Source: Anolis carolinensis (Eukaryota). From it: a DNA stretch of 64,000 nt. Position numbers and translations under genes: made by a program. Within the stretch, counting starts at the first letter, position 1; each line of letters starts with the position of its first letter. Positions 3,822-61,066 of the stretch are shown one piece after another. The notes under the pieces are model-generated. The model searched no databases. It had not been told where the DNA came from and worked only from the letters and a program-made list of their open reading frames with translations. Where the stretch lies: NCBI RefSeq assembly GCF_035594765.1, contig NW_026943820.1:13214647-13278646 (forward strand), read 5' to 3'.

Positions 3822-4040
3822 GTCGGTTGAGGTGGTGAGTGGCAGTGTTCAGTTGAGGTGGTGAGTGGCAGTGGTCGGTTGAGGTGGTGAATGGCAGTGT
3901 TCAGTTGAGGTGGTGAGTGGCAGTGTTCAGTTGAGGTGTTGAGTGGCAGTGGTCAGTTGAGGTGGTGAGTGGCAGTGGTCGGTTGAGTTGGTGAGTGGCA
4001 GTGGTCGGTTGAGGTGGTCAGTTGAGGTGGTCAGTTGAGG
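3822..4040 (+). repeat. 26-bp G/T-rich minisatellite GTTGAGGTGGTGAGTGGCAGTG(G/T)TC(A/G), copy 1
   Basis: Directly visible; also at ~11268-11512, 18314-18560, 25387-25632, 32474-32668, 39509-39702, 52195-52390, 60307-60552 with variable unit number. Confidence 0.95.
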
Positions 4041-4980
4041 AGATCACTTGTTGTGGTTGTTTGCGGTGGAGAGATTTCGAGAGCGAGAGCGGTCTTGACA
4101 AGACAGGCGCCTACGACATCGATTCCCTTCTAGGCATATTTGCCATTTGTGCTGTTCTCTTGACTCTTTTGCCTATTTCTTAGTCATGGTAAGTGTTGTT
4201 AAAACGGGACCTACTACTGCTTTGAAATGGGATGAGCTTTTAAAACTAACGTGGCTGCTTTCTCCTTACTCTTCATTTATAGGTACTTAGTTTTTCAGTT
4301 CTCTCTGAGTGAGATTCAAGGGGATTTTGGAACAAAATAATAAAAATATCCTTGAGATGTGGAAAGGAATGAAAGGCTTTGTAATGAATATGCGAGTAAA
4401 AGGAAAATGTGGCAATTTATACATGTTAAGATTTTTGAATAGGAGGTTGGTGGCTTGTCCATGGTTTCAGGCACTGGGGATGACTCTTCAACGGGTTTGG
4501 TGATTTAGTTTAAACTGTCCAAGGTACGGAACCTATTTTGGAATCGGGGCTCAGCACCTTGGGTAGCTCTTTTAAGATCCAGATTAAAGCTAAATTAAAT
4601 TCACGATGTGCGGTGTGGATTTCTACTGCCTCTTTTTTTGGCCGTCCCAAAAATCCCAGCATCTTTGGATGACTGCATATTTGAATATTTGAAAAGGGGA
4701 AGGAAACACTTTCAACATCCCATGTAGACATTGATGAACTTCTTATCCATTCTCTTCCTAATCCTTGGAAGCTTTCACCCAAAAGATATGATTTTGGAAA
4801 CAGTTCAAGGAAAAACCTATCGAGAAGGTGCCCTAAAATAATTTTCCAAGGCATAGTGGATCATTTTGCCCCAATTTCACTTGGCCTTCATCGTCTTTTG
4901 GAGGTTGTTTGTTGGCCTTTCCCAGAGCCTGAGTGTGACTTCCTCCAAGTCTTCCTGTGACCTCTTTCAAGATTTTAGAG

Positions 4981-5114
4981 CAGTGGTTCTCAACCTGGGT
5001 CCCCAGATGTTTTTGGCCTTCAACTCCCAAAAATCTTAACAGCTGGTAACTGGCTGGGGTTTCTGGGAGTTGTAGGCCAAAAACATCTGGGGTCCAGGTT
5101 GAGAACCACCTCAG
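4981..5114. mobile_element. Palindromic hAT/Charlie MITE in intron 1 (present in copies 1-7)
   Basis: TIRs CAGTGGTTCTCAACCTGG / CCAGGTTGAGAACCAC, internal inverted symmetry, flanked by 8-bp TTTTAGAG direct repeat. Confidence 0.8.
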
Positions 5115-5139
5115 TTTTAGAGGCTGTGCTGTAAGACTA

Positions 5140-5250
5140 GAGAGCTATGTGATATAGTGGTTTGAGTGTTGGATCAGGATGCAAGGAGACCAGGGCTCAA
5201 ATCCCCATTTGTTTTGGCCATAGCAACCCACTGGGTGACTCTGGGCAATA
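5140..5250 (+). mobile_element. Degenerate tRNA-derived SINE head
   Basis: A-box-like GTGATATAGTGG and B-box-like GGCTCAAATCC followed by CACTGGGTGACTCTGGGCAA. Confidence 0.4.
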
Positions 5251-57152: not shown

Positions 57153-57774
57153 GAACCCGGAGATTAGATTTATTTATTTTCTCTTTTTGTAGGTAGTCTG
57201 TCAGTAGTTTCCAGTCCGTTCTATGAATTGATGTTCTATCCTGGGCCAATTTTTGTGTCAGGAAGTCCACATTCATTATGTCCAACACTTTAGAAATCCA
57301 TTTTTCAATACTAGGTATTTTATCCTTTGTAACTGCATAGATCACTAAACCTTTACTTTTTAAGGTTGCCTTCTCAATAGTCATTTTTTATATACATATT
57401 TATTTTCTCTTTTTGTAGGTAATCTGTAAGTAGTTTCCATTCCGCTCTATTAATTGATGTTCTATCCTGGGCCAATTTTTGTGTCAGGAAAGCCATATTC
57501 ATTATGTCCAAGTCTTTAGAAATCCATTTTTCAATACTAGGTATTTCTTGAAATTTCCATTCCTGTGCCAGAGTAATTCTAGCCGCTGTTGTAAAATAGA
57601 ATATAATCCTATCTGTGTTTTTATCTACCTGTGGATTTGTGATTCCCAATAAAAATATTTATGATTTAAATTCAAATTGTTCCTGTAAATTTTTTGTCAT
57701 TTTTTTATACCACGTACCAGACCTTTTTTACCCTTTTGCACTCCCGCCACATGTGGATGAAAGTGCCGATATTC

Positions 57775-58721
57775 ATAGAATCATAGAATCATAGAATAGT
57801 AGAGTTGGAAGAGACCACATGGGCCATCCAGTCCAACCCCCTGCTAAGAAGCAGGAAATTGCATTCAAAGCACCCCCGACAGATGGCCATCCAGCCTCTG
57901 CTTAAAAGCCTCCAAAGAAGGAGCCTCTACCACGGCCCCGGGGAGAGAGTTCCACTGTCGAACAGCTCTCACAGTGAGGAAGTTCTTCCTGATGTTCAGG
58001 TGGAATCTCCTTTCCTGTAGTTTGAAGCCATTGTTCCGTGTCCTAGTCTGCAGGGCAGCAGAAAACAAGCTTGCTCCCTCCTCCCTATGACTTCCCTTCA
58101 CGTATTTGTACATGGCTATCATGTCTCCTCTCAGCCTTCTCTTATGCAGGCTAAACATGCCCAGCTCTTTAAGCCGCTCCTCATAGGGCTTGTTCTCCAG
58201 ACCCTTAATCATTTTAGTCGCCCTCCTCTGGACGCTTTCCAGCTTGTCAACATCTCCCTTCAACTGTGGTGCCCAGAATTGGACGCAGTATTCCAAGTGT
58301 GGTCTGACCAAGGCAGAATAGAGGGGAAGCATGACTTCCCTGGATCTGGACGCTATTCCCCTATTGATGCAGGCCAGAATCCCATTGGCTTTTTTAGCAG
58401 CCGCATCACATTGTTGGCTCATGTTTAACTTGTTGTCCACAAGGACTCCAAGGTCTTTTTCGCACACACTGCTGTCAAGCCAGGCGTCCCCCATTCTGTA
58501 TCTTTGATTTCCATTTTTTCTGCCGAAGTGAAGTATCTTGCATTTGTCCCTGTTGAACTTCATTTTGTTAGTTTTGGCCCATCTCTCTAGTCTGTCAAGA
58601 TCGTTTTGAATTCTGCTCCTGTCTTCTGGAGTGTTAGCTATCCCTCCCAGTTTTGTGTCGACTGGAAACTTGATGATCGTGCCTTCTAACCCTTCGTCTA
58701 AGTCGTTAATAAAGATGTTGA
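57775..58721 (-). mobile_element. 5'-truncated CR1 LINE inserted in the L1 remnant of copy 7
   Basis: FINDLDEG...DTKLGG, KFNRDKCK, EKDLGVLVD, LVRPHLEYCVQFWAP; (ATTCTATG)n tail; empty site GATATTCTTTCCAC in the other copies. Confidence 0.95.
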
Positions 58722-60696
58722 TCTTTCCACTTTCCCAGCACTTTCCATTTGTTTTTCCTTTATTATACAAAGCCAGTTTTTTCGGAGTTAACTGCCACAT
58801 GTAGAACATTTTGTGCCAATTCTCCTCGATCTCCGCTGCATATGCCTATCCTGGCTTCTTTGTCCATATCTCCTCCCACGGACTCATGCAAATGGTGTGT
58901 CCTACTTCTCTGGCCCATTTTGTCATCACTTCCTTTACTTGTTCCTCCTCTGTCGCCCAGGTAAGTAATTGCCTAGAGATTATTTTTATTAATTTACTAG
59001 CTTGGGGACCCGGCGATGCCTGGGTCATTTGAGAAAGGCATTGTTTGCATGTGTTCCAAGTGTAGTCAATATCCAATGTCAGCTGGGTTCAGTGGGTGTA
59101 GGTGAACTCCAACTCCCATTTGCAAGTCCCATCGTCCAGTGTCCATCCCCCTCCAAACAGCGCCAGGATGTAGAGTAGGTCATGGGGGCTCTATGTACCA
59201 AGTTTGGTCTTGATCAGTCATTTGTGTGGGTCACGGTGCTCTCAAGAAGTGAGTGAAGATACTGCAAGTCCCATCATCCATGGTCCCTCCTCCTCCAAAC
59301 TGCACCAGGATGTAAAGTGGGCCACCCTGCACCTGTGTGTCAATTTGGTGCAGTTTCATCATTCGTAGGCATGACAGTGGTCTGTGGGAGGTGAATTGGA
59401 TGAAGGTACTGCAGATCCCATAATCCTTGGTCCATCCTCTGCCAAACTGCTGCAGCATGTAAAGTGTGTCATTTGGGGTATGTGTGCCTGGTTGAGTTCA
59501 GTTCTGTGATTCGTGGCAGTTGCTATATGCAACCATCTCAAAATAACACAACACACCAGACATCACAGTTGTGGAAAAGAAAAAGGTTTGGATCATTGAT
59601 GTTGCCATCCCAGATGAGAGTTGCATTGACGAAAAACAACAGGAAAAACTCAGCCGCTATCAGGACCTCAGGATTGAATTGCAAAGACTCCGGCAGAAAC
59701 CAGTGCAGGTGGTCCTGGTGGTGATGGGCACACTGGGTGCCGTGCCAAAAGATCTCAGCCGGCATTTGGAAACAATAGACGTTGACAAAATTACAATCCG
59801 TCAACTGCAAAAGGCCACCCTACTGGGATCTGCGCGCATCATCTGAAAATACATCACACAGTCCTAGACACTTGGGAAGTGTTCGACTTGTGGTTTTGTG
59901 ATATGAAATCCAGCATATCTTTCTTGTTTGCTGTGTCATAATAAAATATTATTATTATTAATAATAATACCAATAATAATAATGCAGCATTTGTGTCCTA
60001 TTTTTCTCCAGAGGTGACATCTGACACTCAAACCAATCAGAATATTTAATTTATGTGCCACTTCTCTCCCATAATGGAGCCAACTTGCCCAGTTTCTGAT
60101 TCAAAGAAGGATTGATAGATATTTCATTGATTTATTTCATTGGCTGTTGGATTGGGACCCAGGACAGCTCAGTTGAAACCAGTAGACTTTCAAACCACAG
60201 TTCAAACCATCGCAAGGGACGTGATTGGCCAGATGGGACCGAGTAGAATGGACTTTGTTTGTTTTGTTTCCTTGGAGATGAGATAGAATGTTGGGAAAGG
60301 TGGCTGGTCAGTTGAGGTGTTGAGTGGCATTGGTCGGTTGAGGTGGTGAGTGGCAGTGTTCAGTTGAGGTGTTGAGTGGCATTGGTCGGTTGAGGTGGTG
60401 AGTGGCAGTGTTCAGTTGAGGTGTTGAGTGGCAGTGGTCAGTTGAGGTGGTGAGTGGCAGTGGTCGGTTGAGTTGGTGAGTGGCAGTGGTCGGTTGAGTT
60501 GGTGAGTGGCAGTGGTCGGTTGAGGTGGTCAGTTGAGGTGGTCAGTTGAGGAGATCACTTGTTGTGGTTGTTTGCGGTGGAGAGATTTCGAGAGCGAGAG
60601 CGGTCTTGACAAGACAGGCGCCTACGACATCGATTCCCTTCTAGGCATATTTGCCATTTGCGTTGTTCTCTTGACTTTTTTGCCTATTTCTTAGTC

Positions 60697-61066
60697 ATGG
60701 TAAGTGTTGTTAAAACGGGACCTACTACTGCTTTGAAATGGGATGAGCTTTTAAAACTAACGTGGCTGCTTTCTCCTTACTCTTCATTTATAGGTTACTT
60801 AGTTTTTCAGTTCTCTCTGAGTGAGATTCAAGGGGATTTTGGAACAAAATAATAAAAATATCCTTGAGATGTGGAAAGGAATGAAAGGCTTTGTAATGAA
60901 TATGCGAGTAAAAGGAAAATGTGGCAATTTATACATGTTAAGATTTTTGAATAGGAGGTTGGTGGCTTGTCCATGGTTTCAGGCACTGGGGATGACTCTT
61001 CAACGGGTTTGGTTATTTAGTTTAAACTGTCCAAGGTACGGAACCTATTTTGGAATCGGGGCTCAG
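60697..61066 (+). other. Start of array copy 8 (ATG exon and beginning of intron 1), interrupted by an LTR element
   Basis: Matches the unit up to GGGGCTCAG at 61066, then switches to LTR sequence. Confidence 0.85.

Follow-up and report, generated by a model that had tools for sequence, protein, structure and literature searches.

Truncated paralogs that arose by partial segmental duplication include SRGAP2C, NOTCH2NL and ARHGAP11B. In the chromatin remodeller CHD2, the CHCT domain binds the N-terminal helix of RTF1 (PMC12390759, PMC13075793, PMC12080455), and residues 1611-1828 (the last ~220) bind poly(ADP-ribose) (PAR) and suffice for recruitment to breaks (PMC6013553). Mammals have a stand-alone DUF4208 gene, C17orf64 (CHCT1), which is testis-specific (PMC10137952). 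Here we describe, in a 64,000-nucleotide stretch of Anolis carolinensis DNA (GCF_035594765.1, contig NW_026943820.1, forward-strand positions 13,214,647 to 13,278,646; hereafter the window), a tandem array in which counterparts of the last six coding exons of CHD2 stand behind a foreign first exon. An earlier note on this DNA had described it as an amplified family of CHD2 tail-only genes. From the analysis below, we consider that the array probably holds a live gene.

Self-comparison of the window gave 7 full head-to-tail units of ~7.05 kb and an 8th stub (60300-61066), with a whole-unit identity of 95-99.9%, in agreement with the tandem amplification and the count of at least 8 near-identical ~7 kb units given earlier. 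Each unit carries an upstream exon, E0, ending in ATG and followed by a GTAAGT donor, and then six exons, E1 to E6, with AG/GT edges, the E1 donor of copy 1 excepted. Copy 2, free of sequence gaps, served as reference; spliced on paper, it yields 423 codons and 0 stops. On the plus strand, E0 (11513-11657, 5′ edge provisional) is a recruited, non-CHD2 first exon whose ATG (11655-11657) directly precedes the donor. E1 (13332-13466, 45 codons) encodes the linker ahead of CHCT, E2 (13736-13914) the first part of CHCT (PF13907, E 9e-15), E3 (14006-14108) its last helices, E4 (14721-15006, 75 nt more than in gecko or skink CHD2) an expanded Ala-Pro/poly-Pro tract, and E5 (15155-15404) a His/Arg/Asp-rich disordered tail, while E6 (15806-16121) runs through the stop codon. 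The predicted 423-aa product is basic (isoelectric point 9.7), with basic clusters typical of nuclear proteins. A second frame is open for ~200 codons across E5-E6 (window 15155-16158), and is used by a RefSeq model that skips E4.

These six exons correspond to the end of CHD2. The last six coding exons of gecko CHD2 (135, 179, 100, 211, 250 and 334 nt) match E1 to E6, with equal phases in gecko and skink, and identity to skink CHD2 is ~59-71% per exon for E1-E3, E5 and E6, E4 being more diverged. Exon sizes, phases and tail are all of CHD2 type, so the gene derives from CHD2 and not from CHD1. E2 and E3 together match Pfam PF13907 (CHCT/DUF4208), and the predicted structure of the domain (predicted local distance difference test score, pLDDT, of 80) matches the nuclear magnetic resonance structure of the CHD1 CHCT, 2N39 (E 1e-9, 1.2 Å). 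When long CHD2 pieces were searched by tblastn over the full unit, matches were confined to the last six exons, and no chromodomain, SNF2 ATPase, SANT-SLIDE or helix-turn-helix (HTH) region was found in it; the predicted product is thus not a CHD remodeller. Array introns align to CHD2 partial copies at a second anole locus, L002, showing that parental introns were retained. Retained introns and the six-exon structure shared with gecko and skink point to a partial duplication of CHD2 at the DNA level. A processed pseudogene is ruled out by the presence of six introns. The earlier note had recognised the peptides as the last CHD2 exons with a CHCT domain, and had proposed a DNA-level duplication that gained a new 5′ end; each of these proposals is borne out, the new 5′ end being the recruited E0 with its ATG, which is shared with an older paralog.

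This older paralog was reached through the second protein match, XP_062836974, which leads to L002, a locus of the same genome on a 207-Mb chromosome. In L002:1-28048, CHD2 3′ partial copies form an older tandem array that has decayed, and the junction that created the chimera lies within it. Two decayed partial copies there hold more upstream CHD2 exons than the window array, and between them lies a chimeric unit (L002:7129-19092) in which E0, its ATG and its donor are intact and join abruptly to a CHD2 intron, followed by the CHD2 tail exons. The E0 ATG, the sole one within 400 bases upstream, and the donor are thus both retained in L002. A putative promoter segment with an ATTGG/CCAAT box, upstream of copy 2 (11104-11265, plus strand), is 91% identical to L002:7129-7295 with 0 indels, and is missing before copy 1. 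It is followed by a 26-bp minisatellite at the 5′ end of the unit (11266-11512, plus strand), with 7.5-9.5 repeats per copy versus ~2 in the old paralog.

Old unit and array gene share derived residues and are grouped in the tree, with low support. The old unit reaches the CHCT exon by an in-frame 33-codon hybrid exon. In the array lineage, by contrast, the two CHD2 exons nearest upstream of E1 were both deleted; two fused CHD2 intron remnants, matching L002:4663-4837 and 6027-6215, mark the place (12962-13331, plus strand). Downstream, homology to the old paralog ends ~17 bases past the stop codon, within a putative 3′ untranslated region (16122-16640, plus strand) that has an AATAAA at 16611 as candidate poly(A) signal. 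The old unit is broken: its E2 has gained an insertion and lost 12 nt, its E4 has lost single bases as well as the donor, and a stop stands near the end. Non-coding (intron) distance between array and old unit is 12.3%, with 26 indels, 21 of which are not multiples of three, and the chimera is therefore much older than the array. We read the family history from these sequences as one of birth, death and re-amplification. The new finding on the capture of E0 by an anole CHD2 tail is this older, now broken copy of the same chimera on a macrochromosome. As to the source of E0, no match was found in the CHD2 introns held in L002. Its being a high-copy repeat is ruled out by flat depth in the DNA runs described below.

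Substitution differences among the window copies, exons and introns alike, amount to 0-1.2% and are highest for the two end copies. The copies show mosaic variant patterns, typical of unequal crossing-over or conversion. All lie on the plus strand. Copy 1 (3822-9067; ATG 4186, stop 9067) is probably dead: a TA-flanked, 323-bp inverted-repeat miniature inverted-repeat transposable element (MITE, 6040-6362) sits between its E1 and the donor of E1, so that E1 runs into CAGTAG, the GT donor having been shifted away. This copy also lacks the upstream segment that precedes the 26-bp repeat in the others. The six GT-AG exons with matching phases that had been claimed for copies 1-7 therefore stand for copies 2-7 and fail in copy 1. 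From ATG to stop, copy 3 spans 18704-23194; the other copies are copy 4 (25777-30282), copy 5 (32813-37316), copy 6 (39847-49996) and copy 7 (52534-57152), and the copy 8 stub, with E0 and an ATG at 60697, is ended by a long terminal repeat (LTR) element from 61067. The first intron of copy 6 contains an LTR retrotransposon (41178-46838) of Ty3/gypsy type, inserted in a TA repeat; its two 364-bp LTRs are identical, it has a single open frame of ~1600 codons, and the insertion is very recent.

Copies 3 to 7 each contain an N gap in E4 (21864-22000, 28960-29088, 35965-36122, 48669-48804 and 55750-55961). All five N runs fall at the low-complexity Ala-Pro/Pro tract, with stop-free flanks on both sides, and in five of five gapped copies left flank, stated gap and right flank add up to a multiple of 3 (chance 1/243). 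If the stated gap lengths are correct, the E4 frame would be kept in these copies, though a gap may contain a stop. Coding indels between copies were +3 (E3), -18 (copy 1 E5), -3 (copy 7 E6, one codon lost) and +12 (E4 tract, copy 1 versus 2). These are all multiples of 3, as had been stated, and the description of copies 2-7 as lacking stops and frameshifts in readable sequence likewise stands, with 423 open codons in copy 2 and open gap flanks elsewhere.

Selection was assessed with gecko and skink CHD2 and the decayed anole copies as outgroups, in place of an intact anole CHD2. In a neutral simulation of one branch (~6%), the probability that the 1272-nt frame, the start and 24 splice bases all survive was 4e-6 to 4e-5, a strong figure that is inflated by the gene having been picked for being intact. 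Outside codon repeats, 6 of 6 coding indels were in frame, versus 5 of 26 non-coding ones. The long-term frame maintenance proposed in the earlier note thus holds when tested against the older paralog instead of near-identical copies. Within CHCT, the proportion of non-synonymous differences (pN) was 0.096 and that of synonymous ones (pS) 0.297 (ratio 0.32; Fisher p 2e-4), and CHCT pN was below the tail value of 0.167 (p 0.008). Branch omega for CHCT was 0.22 (p 0.03 against 1). It was also low in the old lineage (0.10), which therefore functioned too for a time. Relative to gecko CHD2, CHCT differs at 27 sites, and the columns concerned are less conserved than those of the unchanged sites (p 0.002); the two decayed partial copies are changed at invariant CHCT columns. 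Between copies, codons 1-140 show 3 silent and 0 replacement changes. In the tail, pN (0.167) about equals pS (0.165). A fair reading of these comparisons is that the frame was kept, that the CHCT fold is constrained, though much relaxed, and that the tail is drifting or driven.

What such a gene might do is a more tentative matter. Our preferred reading, to which we give somewhat less than even credence, is that of a live, fast-evolving, motor-less chimeric family with a CHCT domain and a PAR-binding tail, acting as a decoy or adaptor at RTF1 and the PAF1 complex (PAF1C). The sequences show that the 3′ part of CHD2 was duplicated at the DNA level and joined to a foreign, putative promoter and a first exon supplying only a start codon, and that deletions left no more than CHCT and the tail. 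The macrochromosome lineage later died; the other gained a new 3′ end and was recently multiplied into a head-to-tail array. The basic 423-aa product, as predicted, keeps a foldable CHCT bundle and has neither chromodomains, ATPase nor DNA-binding domain. It might be made in a restricted tissue and enter the nucleus, where CHCT would occupy the RTF1 N-terminal helix of PAF1C and the tail would occupy PAR or nucleic acid. Since it could not remodel, it would compete with CHD1/2 or recruit other partners, copy number setting the dose. For the tissue, our best guess is the germ line, on the model of testis-specific C17orf64 and of fast-evolving ampliconic genes.

Several results weigh against this reading, starting with expression. 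Four sequencing runs (X3, X8, X9 and X19) were aligned on 11520-16750. No spliced contig or exon-edge joint was found in any of the four, three of which (X3, X8 and X9) are genomic-like, with depth flat across introns; in the run search for the array stretch, none of the runs that contain it is on record as RNA. Run X19 (2014; library type not on record) gave one contig, with a depth of 586 across 11520-12024 (E0 plus the beginning of the intron), 54 immediately past this peak, and 0-25 over E1-E6, a genomic-like background that falls to zero over E2; the three other runs are flat there. The peak looks like an enrichment library with a promoter peak, or like short unspliced RNA, and not like the mRNA. 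No transcript-derived fragments of the family were found in protein searches, which were limited in length, so that this blank is weak. Two Logan contigs, L004 and L009, are mammal-like and were set aside. The earlier note had named the lack of spliced transcripts, combined with a dN/dS near 1, as what would speak against a live gene. No spliced transcript was seen in the four runs, three of them genomic-like, and dN/dS is indistinguishable from 1 over the whole gene, only the CHCT part being below 1.

The other adverse points come from annotation, codon comparisons and the literature. The best protein match is a RefSeq model of Anolis carolinensis (GCA_035594765.1) lying exactly on copy 6, on a 30-Mb scaffold for which the literature yielded no record of sex linkage. 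Two RefSeq proteins were found, and both begin in intron sequence; one ends after E3 and the other skips E4 and is out of frame, so that they use no E0, avoid E4, and neither equals the 423-aa model. We rejected a start in intron sequence, as CHD2 homology does not support this upstream extension and the old paralog retains E0. Codon comparisons rest on distant outgroups rather than on parental anole CHD2. The whole-gene branch omega, 0.65, is indistinguishable from 1 (p = 0.27). Nor does CHCT pN fall significantly short of the rate in introns (p 0.24), since silent sites of exons evolve faster than introns here. In mouse embryonic stem cells, CHCT deletion had little chromatin effect (PMC12390759). 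Finally, conserved positions are altered (D62V, V112A, F118C, K125N and A130V), several of them in or near the RTF1-facing last helix. With such changes in the RTF1-binding C-terminal helix, a plain dominant-negative role is uncertain.

The changes F118C, K125N and A130V, near the last helix, may weaken or redirect RTF1 binding, which makes a new function a close rival, itself rather unlikely. According to this rival, the gene is live and has a job apart from the partners of CHD2, CHCT serving as a scaffold whose surface, with the tail, is under positive selection; on the same rather doubtful footing, it can be likened to ampliconic germ-line genes engaged in genetic conflict or in sperm chromatin packaging. 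Tail pN exceeds the intron rate of 0.123 (p 0.009), inter-copy tail variants are nearly all replacements, conserved surface positions are changed, the coding Ala-Pro/Pro tract is variable, and amplification is recent. However, tail pS is as high as tail pN, so that CpG-driven neutral drift explains the excess equally well.

Unlikely to a similar degree is a gene that once worked and has since become silent or dispensable; the array would then have expanded recently and neutrally, by unequal crossing-over among abundant repeats. This would fit the lack of spliced RNA in the four runs and the absence of the 423-aa product from the RefSeq models found. The damage to copy 1, the LTR insertion in copy 6 and the truncation of copy 8 agree with it, as does the death of the sister lineage on the macrochromosome, and the array copies are too young to have decayed. 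Survival of frame and splice sites over the ~6% branch implies, however, that any death was only very recent, and the silent-only variation of CHCT among copies and the X19 peak on E0 also argue against it.

That one locus was repeated by mis-assembly is very improbable: N runs do lie at the same homologous place in 5 copies, and copies 4 and 5 are 99.96% identical across 5 kb, but the copies differ by private insertions (MITE, LTR element and a LINE piece; LINE, long interspersed nuclear element) and mosaic variant patterns, and copy-distinguishing variants recur across independent runs. As 14 of 17 variants from independent sequencing runs are differences between window copies, the array is hardly a mis-assembly. 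One copy-distinguishing variant was present in both states within a single DNA run, and minor variants stood at ~1/8 of total depth in one DNA run, at odds with the single copy that the earlier note had envisaged as an artefact.

Other elements surround the array. A related LTR element (61067-64000, minus strand) cuts copy 8, with a second, more distant element nested beside it, and a CR1-like LINE fragment (57775-58721) lies downstream of copy 7 only. At the other end, a putative histamine H3-type receptor-like gene would have its first coding exon at 590-885 (minus strand), judged by a motif; it stands head to head with the array, at a distance of ~3 kb. An R4/Dong-like LINE lies in a TAA repeat at 1330-2760, and every unit includes a 410-bp 3′ piece of the same family (as at 10506-10915). 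A prokaryotic genome scan and a sigma-70 scan, of no relevance to this DNA, gave nothing.

CHD2 is sensitive to dosage, and only recently was the role of its CHCT, RTF1 binding, defined. The anole gene offers a natural CHCT-plus-tail with a readable birth record, made of dead ancestor-like copies, a captured ATG exon and a later amplification. Together with an independent parallel in vipers, it allows one to ask directly what a CHCT does on its own and why genes of this kind recur, a question equally open for mammalian CHCT1. The exon structure of the array differs from the public annotation found for it, and no papers on anole or snake CHD2 duplicates were found in the literature.

Compared with CHD2 itself, the anole gene shares the last six coding exons with their phases, the CHCT domain and a His/Arg/Asp-rich tail with a CHD2-type C-terminus. 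Unlike CHD2, it is devoid of chromodomains, ATPase, SANT-SLIDE and HTH, and has a foreign first exon, a new 3′ end and a Pro-rich insert; its CHCT pN to gecko or skink is 0.13, versus 0.004 between these two. With CHCT1/C17orf64 it shares CHCT/DUF4208 as sole folded domain. Unlike CHCT1, it is multi-copy; it nests among the partial CHD2 copies of the anole and retains the introns and tail of CHD2, and was therefore probably born separately and much later. No CHCT1 sequence was identified among the matches (the human sequence was not sought), and the separation is by tree and introns.

A squamate parallel is an N-truncated CHD2 duplicate in Crotalus tigris (XP_039215232; L008:10001-21617) and Vipera latastei (KAM3827943; L003:1-15729). 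It too is a 3′ partial duplicate without chromodomains and most of the ATPase, and its CHCT (pN 0.04, pS 0.16) is, by these values, under purifying selection. It differs from the anole gene in its length of ~780 aa, in keeping SANT/HTH, in its shortened last exon and in being single copy, between CHD2 and RGMA. It groups with snake CHD2 (100% support), and is therefore an event independent of the anole array. Similar N-truncated models occur in other Crotalus species and in the king cobra, and the CHCT of full-length snake CHD2 is unusually diverged (pN 0.13 to gecko). Gekko kuhli (L006, L007) has inverted, near-identical CHD2 tail copies ~250 kb from CHD2, and in Lerista edwardsae two models of the CHD2 tail lie on different short contigs; in both cases, a recent duplication or an assembly effect is possible. 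Relatives in other anoles were not found in the length-limited protein searches, again a weak blank. One could imagine, as a speculation we hold to be improbable, that squamates repeatedly and independently derived motor-less CHD2-tail genes (anole array and viper duplicate, as mammals did CHCT1), and that the anole family, ampliconic, expressed in the germ line and tuned by copy number, came to inhibit or rewire PAF1C/RTF1-coupled remodelling and PAR-dependent repair, that is, to be a natural dominant-negative for a dosage-sensitive remodeller.

Finally, of the features expected of a functional truncated paralog, the anole gene has a duplication that carried parental introns and an open frame with constraint, the latter in CHCT only, tail omega being ~1. 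Like SRGAP2C, NOTCH2NL and ARHGAP11B, which can antagonise or rewire their parents and vary in copy number, it stems from a DNA-level partial duplication that left a paralog without catalytic domain. Those paralogs keep the 5′ end and promoter of the parent, whereas the anole gene keeps the 3′ end and works, if at all, from a borrowed promoter and start codon.

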